64,000 nt of DNA from Macrostomum hystrix (Eukaryota > Animalia > Platyhelminthes). Positions 1 to 9,000 of this stretch are shown here, one piece after another. The position numbers and the translations under genes are program-made. Each line of letters begins with the position of its first letter. Position 1 is the stretch's first letter. Below the pieces are notes generated by a model. The model did no database searches and was not told the DNA's origin. It saw only the letters and a list, made by a program, of their open reading frames with translations. Where the stretch lies: NCBI GenBank assembly GCA_950097015.1, contig CATNEN010000039.1:3596001-3660000 (forward strand), given 5' to 3'.

Positions 1-316
1 GAGCGATCTCTCCTGCGGAGCTCCCAATTTGAACCCAATCTAGCCATTGTCTGTCACTTTTTAATTCAGTTCTCACGCCTGCGACCTGCTATTCTCAGTA
101 GTGAGTGTTGTTTGGTATAAATTATCAACAGCAACTTGGCTCACTGCTGCGCGTGATTTCTAGTTTTCAATCTGACTGAGGCTAAACAAAGGGATAATTC
201 ATTTAGGCGGAAAAGTACAAGTAATATAGGTACTGCTGCAACCTACTAATCACCTGAGGTTTATTATTTAATAAAATCTGACATTTCCTATTGCAGGTTC
301 GCCAGCCGGACTCGCC

Positions 317-778
317 ATGTTTCTAGCCGCTTCCAGATCAGTTCGTTCGGCACTGAGTCTGTCGCCACGCTCTCTGACGGCCGCGCTATTTTCGACATCT
401 TCCGCATCAACACCCGGCTCGATGCACGCCAAGATTGCGGAGATGGTCAAGGCCAACAAGGTGGTCGTGTTCATGAAGGGCGTGCCGGAGGAACCCCGCT
501 GCGGCTTCTCCAACGCCGTCATCAAGATTTTGGCTTTCCACGGTCTGAAGCCGGGCGAATACTCCGCTCACAATGTCCTGGAGGATGAGCAGCTGCGTCA
601 GGATATCAAGACGTTTAGCGACTGGCCAACGATCCCGCAGGTCTACTTCAACGGCGAGTTCATCGGCGGCTGCGACGTCATGATTAAGATGCACCAGAAT
701 GGCGAACTCATTGAAGAGCTGAAGAAGGTTGGCATTAAGTCCGCCCTGCTGGCCGCTGCCGAGGAAAAAAAGCAGTAG
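317..778 (+). CDS. GLRX5: Mitochondrial monothiol glutaredoxin 5 (single exon)
   Basis: 153 aa with an Arg/Ser-rich N-terminal presequence, VVVFMKG, CGFS active site, WPTIPQVY and GGCD motifs. Acceptor tttcctattgcag ends at 296. Confidence 0.95.
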
Positions 779-1074
779 AAATTATTGGAACCTGATTATT
801 CTGCTTGTTATATTTGTTTCATTGTACTATTGTGAACTTTAGTATCAATTTTCAATTTGAAATCAAACCATTTATATTTTTTGTCTAACTTGTAAAGTGC
901 TCATTTTATCCTCCCTAGAATGGGAATCACAGGATAACCCAACCGTTGGTGTTTCAGTGTTTTCAAAGTCGCGTTTTTTGAACTTTCGGAATAAATTTCC
1001 ATACTTGCCCATTGCAGTTCATAAAAAAGCTGGTTTTAGTTTGCGTTTATTCTGAACATTTTTACGCCACACAC

Positions 1075-1165
1075 TACTATAGGTAGTGTAGCTAGTACTA
1101 CAGGTAGTGTAGCAAGTACAATATATAGTGTAGCTAGTACTATAGGTATTGTAGCTAGTATTACC
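1075..1165. repeat. Short tandem repeat, ~21-bp unit (GTAGCTAGTACTACAGGTAGT-like), ~4 copies
   Basis: Seen directly between GLRX5 and the C5orf22-like acceptor. Confidence 0.7.
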
Positions 1166-1207
1166 TACTATTGGTAATACAAACTCGTATTAATTTATTT
1201 ACTTCAG

Positions 1208-2515
1208 GTTAAACGGCCTCAACCAATTCGGGTGTTTGTTCGCGAGCCGCACCATGAGGTGCTGCTCGATATTTACCGCCTCATCGGCTCCAAACGCTTG
1301 CCATTCTCTCGCCTGACTCTGCTGCACCTGGACTCGCATCCCGACCTGCAGCTGCCACCGGGACTCACGCCAGCGGAATGCCTCGACGCTGGTCCTGACG
1401 GAGCGCTGCAGTCGCGTCTCAGCATCGGCAGCTGGATTCTGCCGGCTGTTTACGCCGGGCACTTTGACAGCGTCTCTTGGCTGAGGCCACCCTGGGCCGA
1501 CCAGCTGCCAGATATTCAGCGTGAGATAGTTCGCATTGGTACTTGTCCAGCTGAGTCAACTGGTGCGGCTTCCAGCGACACTCCTCTTCGCCTGGACTGT
1601 AGTCTGGCCTACTTTGCCGCCGAGTGCATGTACTGTCGTCATTTAACTGATGAGACAGGGTCAGTTGGAGAAGGCAAGTTCCAGGAATTTCGCCTCTGCT
1701 CGCATGATTTTGATGCCATTTCGGGTTACTCTGAGAGTCCGGCCTGCGATTGCGTCGGGGATGCGGGTCTTGGCCAGGCCTCGGCCTACGTTGTGGACCT
1801 AGATTTGGATTATTTTTCAACACAAGACGCGCCAGCAAAATGGCTGCCAGCTGATCTGATCGCCGCTGCCCGCAGAGTCTACGGATGGCGGGATGACGAC
1901 GTGCTGAAGTTGGACGGACCAGCTTTGGAGACGGCCTGTAAGCAAAGGGAGAAGCGGCTAATGAGGCTTGCTCGAATCATGGCCGAGGTTGCAGCCGAGA
2001 GTGACGTGACCGAAAAAAACAGAGCTTCTGGATCTTGCGATGAGAATTTGAAAGCTGGTGACAAATCAGATTTCACAGTGGCTAGTCGTTTGGACACAAC
2101 GGCAAATGGCGATGGTCAATATAATGATGCTGCTGATAATGTTTCTGAGGTGGGAGATGGTTTGGAAGCAGATCGAGTCGCTCTTCGTTCGCTACTCGTT
2201 GAAGCTCGCCGTCTGGGCACCTGGACGCCGGAGGATCTGCACGAGGTGCTCAGCGGTCAGGACGGTCTCAGTGGCGACCTGCCGCATCGGGTTTCGTCGC
2301 CCGAAGAGATTCGGTTAATGGCCAGAAAATTTGGCGACTGGCTCGGCCGACTGTCAGCTCGCTACGGCCCGCCAGCTTGCGTCACCATCGCCAGATCCTC
2401 GCTTGACGACTATTGCCCACCTGATCAGGTGGAACTCATTCAGACTGAAGCAATTGCCTGCTTGCGCACCGCGCTGGAACCCTACGGAATTGTGGAGGTT
2501 ATTTGCAACTACTGA
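1208..2515 (+). CDS. UPF0489/C5orf22-like protein with no genomic ATG; ORF opens at a splice acceptor
   Basis: VFVREPHHEVLLDIYRLIGSKRLP, LLHLDSHPDL, LSIGSWILPAVYAGH, DLDLDYFST, LPHRVSS and TIARSSLDDYCPPDQVELIQ match C5orf22 family blocks. Acceptor ttttacttcag ends at 1207; 1208 is in frame with the ORF; in-frame TAA at 1175-1177. Confidence 0.85.
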   Translation, partial: VKRPQPIRVFVREPHHEVLLDIYRLIGSKRLPFSRLTLLHLDSHPDLQLPPGLTPAECLDAGPDGALQSRLSIGSWILPAVYAGHFDSVSWLRPPWADQLPDIQREIVRIGTCPAESTGAASSDTPLRLDCSLAYFAAECMYCRHLTDETGSVGEGKFQEFRLCSHDFDAISGYSESPACDCVGDAGLGQASAYVVDLDLDYFSTQDAPAKWLPADLIAAARRVYGWRDDDVLKLDGPALETACKQREKRLMRLARIMAEVAAESDVTEKNRASGSCDENLKAGDKSDFTVASRLDTTANGDGQYNDAADNVSEVGDGLEADRVALRSLLVEARRLGTWTPEDLHEVLSGQDGLSGDLPHRVSSPEEIRLMARKFGDWLGRLSARYGPPACVTIARSSLDDYCPPDQVELIQTEAIACLRTALEPYGIVEVICNY

Positions 2516-3009
2516 CTTTGTAGAGTTCAAAATTATAGAAGGAACAAGGTGGGGGATTATGCTATGAAGATTGGCACTGGTATATTGTTTGCTCAATTTC
2601 TTGCGTTGCTTTAAAGCACATCAAGACGACAGCTATAAATTTCCAGCTGTCATATCATTGTACTTTTTCTATTAGTCTTATTATTGCATTGCATCTAATG
2701 CTAAATTTCGGACTGAAATAAAAAATTTTTATTACTGCGTTTTTTGTTCCTATTGCATCCTCCGTCCTTATTTTATTCAGATTTTTCAAGGAAAATCGCA
2801 AACTGGTCACGCTGATAAGTACCCTGATCTTGACTGTACACATCAAAGCCTTTGTCTTACAAGTCAAGAATTCGTCGTCAAACAACTAATTTGACTAAAA
2901 TAGACATCAGGCATATCTTGAGCAGAAGTTTCAAGTTGCTCAACGTTGCGTTCCAGTCTCAGCTTTAACAATCACAAAATACAGCCATCGAACTTATTTC
3001 TCCAGCGCA

Positions 3010-4803
3010 ATGTCCAATCAGGCATCGAATCCAGTGTACCTGGACTACAATGCCACCAGTCCAATGTCGGCTCAGTGCCGTGACGCGGTGATAGAGGCCA
3101 TGTACAATGGCTGGCAGAATCCCAGCGTTTGCTCGCGTGCTCGCATCATTGTTGAATCTGCTCGCCGCTCTGTTGCCGACCTGCTCGGCTGCGAATCGTC
3201 TGCTGTGATATTCACATCCGGTGGTACGGAGAGCAACAACTGGGCTGTGAAGGGGGCTGTCACATTGTTTCGCGATCTGGGCTTACCAGAGGGATCTCGA
3301 CCGCATATTGTGGCCAGCTGCATTGAGCACGACTCGATTCGCAAACCCCTTGAAAGACTGGTTAAGCTGGGCCGCGCGGATGTCACCTGGTTGCCTGTCG
3401 ATCCTGATAGCGGAGCGCTGACAGATCCTTGCCAGGTTCTCGATGCGCTGAGATGGGGCAGCACCTGCTTGGTCACGGTGATGTGGGCTAATAACGAGAC
3501 TGGAGCGATTTTCCCTATACGCGAGGTGATTGATTCTGATTGATTTTTGCAACTGCGTGAGCCTTACTACGTACGATAAAGCTGGCAACCCCGATACCTC
3601 TTAAACACCAGTTTTTAACAATACTACAATAACCTAATTTAGGCAGTGAAGACCCTGTTTAGTGAGTCATAGTTAAATCTAGATGGTCAGGGCCCAGATT
3701 TTTCCGTCTCCGTTAAAACTAGATGGTCAGGACCTTGATTTTTCTGTCGCCGCTAAAGCCATATTTTCAGGGCCCTTATTTGAGAGTCAACGTTGAAAAT
3801 TAATGGTCCGGACCCAGATTTTTTACTCTCCGTTGAAGCTTCCTGGTCAGGACCCTGATTTGTCAGTCGCCATCGAAGCCAAATGATCAGGACCTTGATT
3901 TCTTGTGATTTTGACACCCTCAGATTGCTGATGCACTATTGCAATGGCGCGACCTTAACAGCCAATCAGCAACGAGCTACGCTAACTCTGGCCTGCCGCT
4001 GTTCCACTCGGACGCCTGTCAGGCTATTGGCAAAGTGCCAGTTCACATAGCCAATGGTCTAGATTTGCTCAGCGTTGCCGGCCACAAATTTCAAGGTCCG
4101 CGCGGCGTCGGCGCGCTCTTCAGCCGGCGCCAGCTGTCGCCAATGCTGATTGGAGGTGGCCAAGAAGGCGGGGCACGGGCCGGAACAGAGAACACCCCCG
4201 GATTGGCTGGCCTGGCTGCCGCATCGCGATTGGCTAAAGAGCGACTAGAGAGCGGCCTAGTTGAACAATTAGCCGCTGTGCGAAACCAACTGCGAGACAA
4301 ACTGGTAGGGCCTTGATTCCTTCGGTGACATCGCTCTGAAATCAGCGAGCCCATCGATCAACACTTCGCGCGTCCCTTTTTAGCTAGCGGCCGTTAACAA
4401 CGCCGAGATGGCTGCGTCTACCGGCTTTCGCCTGATTGTGAACAACGATTTTCCACGCGGCCGCATTCTGCCGAACACGCTCAACCTGTCCCTGCTGGCT
4501 GCGGTGTCGTCTGGTTCAACACCAGGCGCCGATGTCGAAGCCGCGTCGGTTCGCAATTATATTTTAGCGCGGCGCGGCATTCTGGCCAGCGCTGGCTCAG
4601 CCTGTCACGCGGCCAGCTGGCCGCAGCCGTCAGCTGTGCTGCTGAAGACTGGCGTTTCGGCTGAGGCGGCCGGTGCCGCGCTTCGACTGAGCGTCGGTCC
4701 GGACACCTCCGTGGCGGATGTCGATCGGGCTGTTGGCGAAGTTGTTGCCGCCCTGCGCCAGTGGCGCCTGGACCATCCGCGTGCTGTTGATTCACTCAGC
4801 TGA
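3010..4803 (+). CDS. SCLY: Selenocysteine lyase (PLP-dependent, class V); exons 3010-3525, 3924-4304, 4384-4803
   Basis: [32 protein letters not shown] (SCLY-type rather than NFS1), [20 protein letters not shown] (PLP lysine), [24 protein letters not shown]. Both GT-AG introns are phase 0 and join the three ORFs in frame. Confidence 0.85.
3681..3905. repeat. Diverged 40-bp tandem repeat, ~5.5 copies, in SCLY intron 1
   Basis: Units at 3681, 3721, 3761, 3801, 3841 and 3881 share (TGG)TCAGGACC..GATTT. Confidence 0.75.
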
Positions 4804-5254
4804 TTGCAGATGCTCCGCATAGAAGAATCGACCCCCTACTTGTAGAGCGCATTGTTGTTAGTTGTTTGCTTGAACTTCTCTGGTTTCGGTATTGTTTTTG
4901 CTTTTTATCGGACGCAATTTTTTTGTTGCAACAATCAACGAAGTGGCAGTCAATTATGTGTTTCTTTTGAAGTTCGTGTTCAAATGGTAACACAGTTTTG
5001 TGTTTTCATTTTTTCTGATACAGCTGTTTATTAATGATCTTTAACCTCTACATGTTTTCACATTTTGGTTCTATTCAGTTTTGCTATTTTAGAAAGCTTG
5101 TTTCAACTTGTACTCACTGTGCTGTGCCAAAATATAGCATTATAGATTTGATTTTCGATTTCAATGTGTCTATATCTTACTTTTTCTTGCCACTTTTCTG
5201 TTGTAAAATAACTTTTTAGTCGGTCACTCAATACTCAGTCAGCTCCCTCCTCTG

Positions 5255-5978
5255 TCTGATGTTTTCCTCCTCTCCGTCGGTTGTTTCCCTCCTCTCCGTC
5301 GGTTGTTTCCCTCCTCTCCGTCGGTTGTTTCCCTCCTCTCCGTCGGTTGTTTCCCTCCTCTCCGTCGGTTGTTTCCCTCCTCTCCGTCGGTTGTTTCCGT
5401 CCTCTCCGTCGGTTGTTTCCCTCCTCTCCGTCGGTTGTTTCCCTCCTCTCCGTCGGTTGTTTCCCTACTCTCCGTTTGTTGTTTCCCTCCTCTCCGTAGG
5501 TTGTTTCCCTCCTCTCCGTCGGTTGTTTCCCTACTCTCCGTCTGTTTTTTCCCTCCTCTCCGTCGGTTGTTTCCCTCCTCTCCGTCGGTTGTTTCCCTCC
5601 TCTCCGTCGGTTGTTTCCCTCCTCTCCGTCGGTTGTTTCCCTCCTCTCCGTCGGTTGTTTCCCTCCTCTCCGTGGGTTGTTTCCCTCCTCTCCGTCGGTT
5701 GTTTCCCTCCTCTCCGTCGGTTGTTTCCCTACTCTCCGTCTGTTTTTTCCCTCCTCTCTATAGGTTGTTTCCCTACTCTCCGTCGGTTGTTTCCCTACTC
5801 TCCGTCTGTTTTTTCCCTCCTCTCCGTCGGTTGTTTCCCTCCTCTCCGTCTGTTGTTTCCCTCCTCTCCGTCTGTTGTTTCCCTCCTCTCCGTCTGTTGT
5901 TTCCCTCCTCTCCGTCTGTTGTTTCCCTACTCTCCGTCAGTTTTTTCCCTACTCTCCGTAGGTTATTTCCCCGCTCCG
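5255..5978. repeat. 22-bp pyrimidine-rich minisatellite (CTCCGTCGGTTGTTTCCCTCCT)n
   Basis: Seen directly; lies between SCLY and RPF2. Confidence 0.97.
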
Positions 5979-6052
5979 TACATTGTCAAGACCTGACGCG
6001 TCCAATCACAGCGGAGAATGCACTAACCCAGCCGCCGCATTCCGCAGCAGTC

Positions 6053-9000
6053 ATGTCCGCCGCAGCGACCAACAGTGTGATAAAGCCGAAAACTCAGGCC
6101 GGCAAGCGGGCCGTGGCCAGGCGCGAAGAGAAGGTGACTGAGAACACCAAGACCTGCCTGCTCATACGCGGCGGTCACACCAGCGAAGCCATCACCGCCT
6201 GCCTGAAGGATCTGTACAGTCTGAAGAAGCCGCACGCCCTAATGCTGAAGCGTCGCAATCCTATCAGACCGTTTGAAGAGGCCGGCTTCGTAGAGCGCAT
6301 GGGTCGCAAGTACGACTGCTCTCTGTTCGCCTTCGCCAGCCATTCGAAGAAGCGGCCTAATAATCTGGTGCTAGGCCGGCTGTTCAACTATCAGCTGCTA
6401 GACATGGTCGAATTTGGCGTTGAATCCTATCAGCCATTGTGCACTTTTCCTGTGGCCAAGGTGCCCGTTGGCACCAAGCCGTGCCTCACCTTTCAGGTAA
6501 AACTAGCTGTACTCACTCAGTATTTAATGGTGCCATTCATTACTCAATCTCACTGTGCAAGAAATGTGCAATCCAGAGTTCAAGTGTAGTTGGAATAGGT
6601 ATAGCACTGCCCGTTCAAATTCGCTAAAACCGCGAATCGCCTTGATGTTAAAAAATTGCCACTCGTAATTTCTCTTCTTTTGGCTTAATTCAAATTTAAG
6701 TATTATTAATATTTTTACTATAGCTTCTTTCGATAACTCAATTTTGGTCTCATTCTCAAACAGGGCGAAGAGTTTGACAGCGATCCGATCCTGGGCGCCA
6801 TCAAGAACCTGCTGCTGGACCTGTTCCAGGGCCCGCGGGTTGAAAAGATTCGCCTGCAAGGCTTGGAACACCTGATTCAGTTCTCCTATTGTGAGGAGAA
6901 AATTCTAGTCAGGTAGGGCGTCCTTGGTTATGTTTATCGCTTATTGTCTTTCAGGATCTGCATTCGATCCCTTCAGGAACCGCATTATCTTCCTTCAGCA
7001 GCAGTCTCCTATTCCTTCAGTCAGCAGCTGTCTTATATTCCTTCAGTCAGCAGCAGTCTCCTATTCCTTCAGTCAGCAGCAGTCTCCTATTCCTTCAGTC
7101 AGCAGCAGTCTTCTATTCCTTCAGTCAGCAGCAGTCTCCTATTCCTTCAGTCAGCAGCAGTCTTCTATTCCTTCAGTCAGCAGCAGTCTCCTATTCCTTC
7201 AGTCAGCAGCAGTCTCCTATTCCTTCAGTCAGCAGCAGTCTCCTATTCCTTCAGTCAGCAGCACTCTTCTATTCCTTCAGTCAGCAGCAGTCTCCTATTC
7301 CTTCAGTCAGCAGCAGTCTTCTATTCCTTCAGTCAGCAGCAGTCTCCTATTCCTTCAGTCAGCAGCAGTCTCCTATTCCTTCAGTCAGCAGCAGTCTCCT
7401 ATTCCTTCAGTCAGCAGCAGTAGTATGGGTTAGCAGAACCCTGCCGAACAGTGGAGAGATAGGAGCGCCCGCGGGTGGCGGGGCTCGCTCGAGGTTGACC
7501 GAGTGTGGGGCATTGGCCGCACGTGGGGTGGTGGGGGCCAGGGGAAGGATTGTAGAACCCAGCCGAACAGCGAGATAGGAGCGCCCGGGTGGCGGGGCTC
7601 GCAGAGCTTGATTGGGGTTGGGTTGGTTGCGTTCATATTTTTACACTGGGACTGGCTAACACCGCAGTGATAGGAGGAGATACAAATTGTTGACGTCAAG
7701 AGGAATTAAGTCACTCTTCGGAGCTTGATGCTGTTGCTGAGCATAGCTCTCATCTTCAGCATCATCACTGCCGGAATTTGCATCGACCTGATAAATGTTG
7801 ACAAATGTGATGCCTCCTCGAATCCCTTGCTCAAACATTCGGTACACGTCCGCGTCGGTTAGGAGCTCCGGTTTTGTCCCAGTTGTCTTTAGAGCGGAAT
7901 CGAATAACAGTCCAGGTATAGTGACATGATGGAGGGATCTAACCCATCATCCTGAAGGCTCAATTTTCGAAAACACTCGAAAAAATCTGCCAATTGGCGA
8001 GCGTCTAGCTCTAAGTAGCTCCTCATGTAATCGGCAAGGTTCTGGCAATCGAATTCGTGCCAAGCTCGCTGAGCATGATTGTAGTCAGCGTCACTGCACT
8101 CAGACTTCGTCAGCGTGTTAAAAAATCCTTCTGATCTGGTAACGTCGTGACTAATAATTCGGCGCTGCCTTGCAGAAAATCGTAAGGAAAGACTCCTTTG
8201 GCAAGCAGAATTTCTTCAGAGACATTGGGAAGCATGTTCCTCATTTGCATTGTCACGTGACACTCACTAGCCTCCATGTTCCGCATCAGGCTGTCCAGGC
8301 CACAGTTTAGAAACTAGGGAATCAAGAAATTGCAGGAAGAACGATATCAGCTTCTGCTTTCCATTCGCTTCAACACAGTGGAAAAAATTAAGTGCACATT
8401 ATAGCCAGCGAGATAATAGGCAAAAAGCGACGCTTGAGTTGAGCTCTCATGTTACAATCAGCACAGGATGCCCCTTTGAACTGGCCCGTCAGATGATCAT
8501 GGTCCCAGTGTTTCTGAGAAGAGTCTGAAAAGGCCATTCTGCAGCGATAGCAAGCAGTAGAATCGGTGAATGTCTTTTCACTCTCAGCGCTAAAAGCCTT
8601 AGGTTGGTGGCTGTGCGTCTTATTCCACAGATAGATTTCAATTTTTCGACACAACTCTCAGAATCAGTCTCACAAAAAAGCTTCAGACAAGCGTCCGCGT
8701 GTCGCAATTGAGGACCCCCCTTTGGAGAAGGATGTAGCCAGCGGCTGCGGAATGATGCTCTGTAAGGTGCACCATTCCACTGTTTGGCGATGAAGCACCA
8801 GGGTTTTCGAATGCGCTATCAATCAGGCTTGTTGAGACTGCTGCTTCAGAGCACGGAGAATTGAAATCGGCATAGGCAACAAACGGAGGCGATATGGTGT
8901 TTTGCCAGTTGCTGAATTGGAGTGTGCAGTTCTTCTCGACACTTAGCATCACCTCTCGAACAGTGCACTCATCACTTTGATAGCAGTCCTGTCTATGCTT

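Follow-up and report, generated by a model that had tools for sequence, protein, structure and literature searches.

The UPF0489 locus

The window, which is the whole analysed stretch of 64,000 nucleotides of Macrostomum hystrix DNA, contains three genes that follow each other on the plus strand. The gene in the middle is a homologue of UPF0489/C5orf22; it is flanked upstream by GLRX5 and downstream by a gene that Pfam assigns to the class-V aminotransferases. The features of this locus are listed in the order of their positions in the window:

295..1028, plus strand: GLRX5, with its acceptor AG at 295-296, ATG at 317, stop codon at 776-778 and AATAAA at 990-995; RNA contigs end at 1011 and 1028
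1029..1205, plus strand: spacer between GLRX5 and the UPF0489 gene, with no RNA contig, no ATG in any frame and a tandem repeat at 1075-1160
1175..1177, plus strand: in-frame TAA that closes the UPF0489 frame 5´ of the acceptor, found by reading the sequence and by script
1186..1207, plus strand: T-rich tract followed by AG (1206-1207), the trans-splice acceptor, where the leader-bearing contigs of runs X5 and X7 are joined
1208..2515, plus strand: UPF0489/C5orf22 homologue, single-exon coding region, 435 codons with no start ATG in the genome (436 with the leader AUG), TGA at 2513-2515
1232..1234, plus strand: in-frame GTG, codon 9, at which the Pfam match begins as well; a rival near-cognate start
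1628..1630, plus strand: the earliest in-frame ATG in the genome, codon 141 if counting starts at 1208, located within the conserved domain
2516..2738, plus strand: 3´ UTR with AATAAA at 2717-2722; the RNA contigs stop at 2738, 16 nucleotides past AATAAA
3004..5014, plus strand: class-V aminotransferase gene (Pfam), with its acceptor AG at 3004-3005, ATG at 3010 and introns at 3524-3921 and 4304-4382

The coding region of the middle gene starts with GTT AAA CGG at 1208, directly 3´ of the AG at 1206-1207, and is in the same frame as the open reading frame of 427 amino acids that begins with GTG (1232..2515). An in-frame ATG was sought between the TAA at 1175 and position 1208 and is not present there, and a scan of positions 1000-1207 in all frames revealed not a single ATG. 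Thus, an ATG-bearing mini-exon is impossible between the end of the GLRX5 mRNA (~1011-1028) and the acceptor. Further downstream, ATGs in any frame are located at 1254 (frame +1, 20 codons), at 1378 (frame +2, 6 codons) and at 1628. If an ATG is imagined directly before 1208, it opens a frame of 436 codons that runs to the TGA at 2513, as read in window coordinates and not on a joined sequence. A second copy of the UPF0489 gene was not found in a whole-genome DNA search of the M. hystrix assembly.

The original prediction, which had been made from the window sequence, stated that this gene has no start codon of its own, that no mini-exon with an ATG plus donor lies between GLRX5 and 1207, and that the ATG at 1628 is located downstream of the conserved N-terminal blocks. 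All three statements hold: after the TAA at 1175 no in-frame ATG appears until 1628, the region 1000-1207 is free of ATGs, and the HLDSHPD block precedes codon 141.

The spliced leader in RNA and in the genome

Transcript runs X5, X7, X1 and X2, taken from a set of eight runs from two studies, were aligned to positions 1-5200 of the window. One contig of 1,555 nucleotides is present in both X5 and X7; it starts with 23 loose letters, TGCGAAGACTCAATTTATTGCAT, which end in TTGCAT, and continues gap-free with window positions 1207-2738. The 23 leader letters do not match anywhere in the stretch 1-5200. The alignment begins at 1207 and not at 1208 because the leader ends in a G, as does the acceptor AG. 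Since the contig is colinear with the DNA, the UPF0489 coding region contains no intron. Joints of the GT..AG type are present in the X5 and X7 contigs at 3523/3922 and 4303/4383, and the depth between the genes is zero; therefore both runs were taken as RNA-derived. The leader junction at 1207 was observed in these two runs of one study, in assembled contigs, which drop rare isoforms. The leader is also joined at 296, upstream of GLRX5 (where the tail has 25 letters, or 10 letters in run X2 of the second study), and at 3005. Splice joints into 1208 from elsewhere in 1-5200 were found in none of the four runs, and the two introns of the next gene were detected.

Runs X1 and X2 belong to the second study and come from related organisms A and B. 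Their coverage does not reach 1207, and X2 has the leader tail at 296. Compared to the window, the X1 and X2 contigs have 6 additional letters after 846-848 and differ by several substitutions within GLRX5 and the 3´ UTR of this gene (530-924). Judged by their letters, which are 95-99% alike to the window, these are close relatives or other strains.

The leader 26-mer, consisting of the loose letters plus G, has 28 exact copies in the M. hystrix assembly, and the reversed control has 0. Two of the copies, L001 and L006, are SL RNA genes and read TTGCATG followed by a GTAAG donor (...TTATTGCATG directly before GTAAGACACC); the leader exon therefore ends in ATG with a canonical GT donor next to it. 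Both loci have the same layout: ...CGGTCTCTTACTGCGAAGACTCAATTTATTGCATG, then GTAAGACACC, a hairpin, the Sm-like AUAUUUUUAG and a 3´ hairpin. The fold of the 114-nucleotide SL RNA has a z-score of -4.3, and the donor is base-paired within the first stem. According to previous work the leaders of M. hystrix and M. lignano are highly conserved, and the final ATG of the M. hystrix leader has been noted as a translation start codon (Wiberg 2023, PMC10468722). The leader found at the UPF0489 gene is this same leader of Macrostomum SL trans-splicing.

Trans-splicing of the UPF0489 mRNA to a leader that donates the AUG, as put forward in the original prediction, is thus supported by the X5 and X7 contigs, which consist of leader plus 1207-2738, and by the leader exon, which ends in ATG and in frame. 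Three circumstances had been named that would speak against it, of which initiation at GTG 1232 is discussed below. One was a cis-spliced upstream exon supplying the ATG; the contigs run uninterrupted from the leader into 1207-2738, and no ATG is present in 1000-1207. Another was a leader that does not end in AUG, and here the SL RNA genes read ...TTGCATG before GTAAG.

Several further observations were made at the leader loci. Many leader copies are arrayed with a period of ~11.6-11.7 kb on three contigs (C15, C17 and C42, e.g. L006:1380-2000). At these loci Rfam detects no curated SL RNA family and reports only a U1 snRNA adjoining L006; this U1 snRNA gene (RF00003, 151.7 bits) is located ~310 nucleotides from the leader copy. 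Four loci (L002, L003, L004 and L005, positions 1501-1526 in each) contain the exact leader without the GTAAG donor, and their downstream sequence is unlike that of the SL RNA genes. Possible origins of these four copies are retro-copying of trans-spliced mRNAs or decay of SL genes. On C7, L003 and L004 are separated by 5 kb and are similar to each other; the open reading frames downstream of the leader-like sequence in L003 revealed nothing interpretable.

Conservation of the protein and its annotation

The translation from 1208 matches the Pfam family UPF0489 (PF12640) with an E-value of 6e-34 over residues 9-203; the score is 118.3 bits, compared to a gathering cut-off of 27, and profile positions 1-167 of 167 are covered. 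An alignment of the window protein with 15 homologues (16 sequences, from M. lignano to mammals) contains 29 invariant columns. The window protein keeps all 29 of them, among them E13, H15, H40, S43-H44-P45-D46, D197/D199/D201 and R396/S398/D400, and 20 of the 29 are located ahead of codon 141. The lack of an ATG is thus not a chance gap, since a product started at 1628 would have lost the larger part of the conserved domain.

The best protein relatives are M. lignano entries with ~61-72% identity. The first eight residues, VKRPQPIR, are identical to M. lignano VKQRQPIR in 6 of 8 positions, which is about the level of the whole alignment (72%), and most animal homologues have a basic pair at the aligned position of K-R. 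Adding the leader methionine makes the N-terminus exactly as long as in Ciona (M-SKKFQKIPIHVVE compared to M-VKRPQPIRVFVRE). Some homologues have an N-terminus as short as a GTG start would give (Capitella, MKTFVVEDH).

An AlphaFold model built from the homologue alignment has a mean pLDDT of 78.5 and a pTM of 0.79. It places beta-strand 1 at residues 7-12, where it straddles the GTG codon 9, and it contains low-confidence insertions at residues 148-178 and 275-314. Among PDB structures the model significantly matches only OspR (8brp), a peptide arginase, with an E-value of 1e-10 and a TM-score of 0.63-0.66 normalised to the target. Since OspR is the only significant structure match, the predicted fold would be arginase-like with conserved His/Asp blocks, and for the animal C5orf22 family this points to a metal hydrolase fold of the arginase type. 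The UPF0489 model has this fold in common with OspR; however, the identity is just ~15%, and a hydrolase activity would be a prediction from the fold.

The comparison with the M. lignano orthologue is based on protein entries, of which its cluster contains three. PAA75225.1 is flagged partial and begins with VKQRQPIRVFIREPHH (VKQRQPIRVF) without a methionine; its first residue corresponds to the codon at 1208. PAA92349.1 is likewise flagged partial and begins with QRQPIRVF. PAA93214.1 is presented as complete and begins with MYCHHLTS, which is the equivalent of the ATG at 1628, and it is without the N-terminal domain. The M. lignano orthologue thus appears to begin at the same codon, likewise without an ATG. 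Ab initio annotation had been expected to mis-start the gene, and in M. lignano this is what happened: two entries are 'partial' without methionine and one was started at an internal methionine. Gene finders will call the UPF0489 gene partial or start it 140 codons late, and both errors are present in the M. lignano GenBank entries. The correct M. hystrix protein very probably begins with a methionine that is absent from the gene, and the main value of the finding is for annotation.

Probable initiation at the leader AUG, and the neighbouring genes

The UPF0489 pre-mRNA is trans-spliced at the AG at 1206-1207 to the Macrostomum spliced leader, the exon of which ends in AUG directly before its own GU donor. 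With the leader joined at 1207 and ending in ATG before GT, the mature mRNA therefore reads ...UUGC AUG GUU AAA CGG.... A scanning ribosome would meet the leader AUG first, in frame with the open reading frame of 436 codons, and the protein would be M-VKRPQPIRVFVREPHH.... No other AUG precedes it on the UPF0489 mRNA, and the leader AUG is the sole one able to yield the conserved protein. As judged from the structure of the mRNA, we consider it very probable that the leader AUG is the main initiator.

The two neighbouring genes differ in this respect, with a leader AUG that is not in their reading frame. On the GLRX5 mRNA it opens a uORF of 10 codons (297-326) that overlaps the genuine ATG at 317, and on the class-V aminotransferase mRNA a uORF of 26 codons (3006-3083) that overlaps the genuine ATG at 3010. 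Since the leader AUG is out of frame and its uORF overlaps the true ATG on both mRNAs, it would be bypassed at least sometimes; to judge from the reading frames, it must on these two mRNAs be either bypassed or dampening translation. Such a bypass on the neighbours makes leaky scanning likely on the UPF0489 mRNA too, and there the use of the leader AUG is probably below 100%.

It might also be possible that translation starts at the near-cognate GTG at 1232 (codon 9), with the leader AUG skipped or irrelevant and with a protein M-FVREPHH... as the product. This GTG is in frame and has a G at -3, the Pfam UPF0489 match begins exactly at this codon and would be full with a GTG start, leaky scanning past the leader AUG must happen on both neighbours, and very short N-termini do occur in homologues such as that of Capitella. 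However, an in-frame AUG is located 8 codons upstream on the same mRNA, and near-cognate codons are usually far weaker than AUG. A ribosome that skips the leader AUG would next meet the ATG at 1254, which is out of frame, before it reaches any in-frame AUG. In addition, the 8 residues before the GTG are identical to M. lignano in 6 of 8 positions with a K-R pair that matches the basic pair elsewhere, and a GTG start would cut into the predicted beta-strand 1 (residues 7-12). The relatives and the predicted strand favour the leader AUG over GTG 1232 without proving it, and we regard a GTG start as improbable.

Even less probable is a product of 295 amino acids that starts at the ATG at 1628, with the upstream open frame being untranslated. 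In the 5´ part of the open reading frame the genome has no other in-frame ATG, and the M. lignano model PAA93214.1 uses the equivalent methionine; such a start would nevertheless delete 140 codons, and with them two thirds of the Pfam domain and 20 of the 29 invariant columns, the HLDSHPD block included. Conservation of the protein sequence of residues 1-140 extends from M. lignano to vertebrates, and the leader AUG as well as the out-of-frame ATGs at 1254 and 1378 are located before 1628. The chances are equally slim for a cis-spliced 5´ exon with an ATG from further upstream (e.g. within or before GLRX5) that is joined to 1208 in some transcripts, so that the leader form would be one isoform. 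Assembled contigs drop rare variants, and cis- and trans-splicing sharing acceptors has been reported in parasitic flatworms (PMC12582326). However, a joint into 1208 from within 1-5200 is seen in none of the four runs, in which the two introns of the next gene were found; furthermore, 1000-1207 contains zero ATGs, and the M. lignano models are 'partial' and likewise have no methionine. Thus, initiation at the leader AUG is the reading that we prefer for the UPF0489 mRNA.

The three genes are encoded on the plus strand, each with a leader acceptor (296, 1207 and 3005), and the GLRX5 and UPF0489 mRNAs end at ~1011-1028 and 2738, respectively. The spacers are short, with ~180-195 nucleotides between the GLRX5 poly(A) site and the UPF0489 gene and 267 nucleotides between the UPF0489 gene and the aminotransferase acceptor. 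More than 1.2 kb located 5´ of GLRX5 are without a long open reading frame, and the nearest one there is on the opposite strand. RNA contigs covering 1029-1206 or 2739-3004 were not found among the assembled contigs, which drop rare species. The arrangement suggests that GLRX5, the UPF0489 gene and the aminotransferase gene are probably one co-transcribed polycistron, in which the UPF0489 gene takes the central position. For M. lignano, precursors that contain several trans-splice sites have been described (Wasik 2015; Wudarski 2017, PMC5730564; Ustyantsev and Berezikov 2021, PMC8629364), and the three-gene layout found here is like that of its multi-gene precursors (PMC5730564; operon share as quoted in PMC12582326). 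Every mature mRNA of an internal gene of a polycistron must carry the leader, and with such an obligatory leader the loss of the gene's own ATG would be tolerated and harmless.

A more far-reaching reading is possible, and we put it forward as a tentative one that is rather doubtful: the dependence on the leader AUG might be old and common to M. hystrix and M. lignano, the proteins of which share just ~60-70% identity, and within one polycistron the same AUG might serve as the obligatory start in the middle gene and presumably as the start of an inhibitory overlapping uORF on both flanks. If this were true, the phase of the acceptor would set the relative translational yield of co-transcribed genes.

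The mechanism itself is not new and has been ordinary in flatworms since 2006, and the UPF0489 gene is a further case of it. Use of the leader AUG as initiator was described for Schistosoma mansoni (Cheng et al. 2006, as cited in PMC9851317, PMC12582326 and PMC5832876), and essentially all reported flatworm leaders are stated to end in an AUG that is able to initiate (PMC12582326). According to the summary in PMC9851317, 28% of the trans-spliced S. mansoni transcripts have the leader AUG in frame, and more than 40 cDNAs need it. The situation in M. hystrix is similar to the S. mansoni case as cited from Cheng et al. 2006, with an AUG before the GU donor, a phase-0 acceptor and an open reading frame without its own initiator. 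It differs from that case in being found in a free-living macrostomorph and not in a parasitic trematode, in the gene, which is UPF0489/C5orf22, and in being known from the structure of the mRNA. The concept of a start codon supplied by the leader is also the same as that of the slORFs (slORFfinder, PMC9851317); however, slORFs of nematodes, trypanosomes and Oikopleura were tested with ribosome footprints, whereas the Macrostomum gene is known from mRNA structure. An estimated 10-20% of the M. hystrix genes are trans-spliced (PMC10468722). Lists of genes that depend on the leader AUG, or a mention of the UPF0489 gene, are not contained in the searched passages of the Macrostomum papers cited here.

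With the UPF0489 gene, a mechanism that was first demonstrated in schistosomes gains a cleanly documented case from a free-living flatworm. One small cluster combines a leader AUG that is in frame and needed with a leader AUG that is out of frame and starts an overlapping uORF. This contrast is a tractable entry to the efficiency with which the leader AUG is recognised.

A 21-bp tandem repeat, TACTATAGGTAGTGTAGCTAG, is located at 1075-1160 in the spacer downstream of GLRX5, with 4.1 copies and 83% matches. It was considered as a recurrent intercistronic signal and rejected, since no other locus of the genome contains it. Downstream of the aminotransferase gene, in the region 5259-6589, a further repeat (5266-5398) consists of short words that are present more than 12 times. 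It is overlapped by an open reading frame (5303-6589) that encodes a Brix domain in its C-terminal part.
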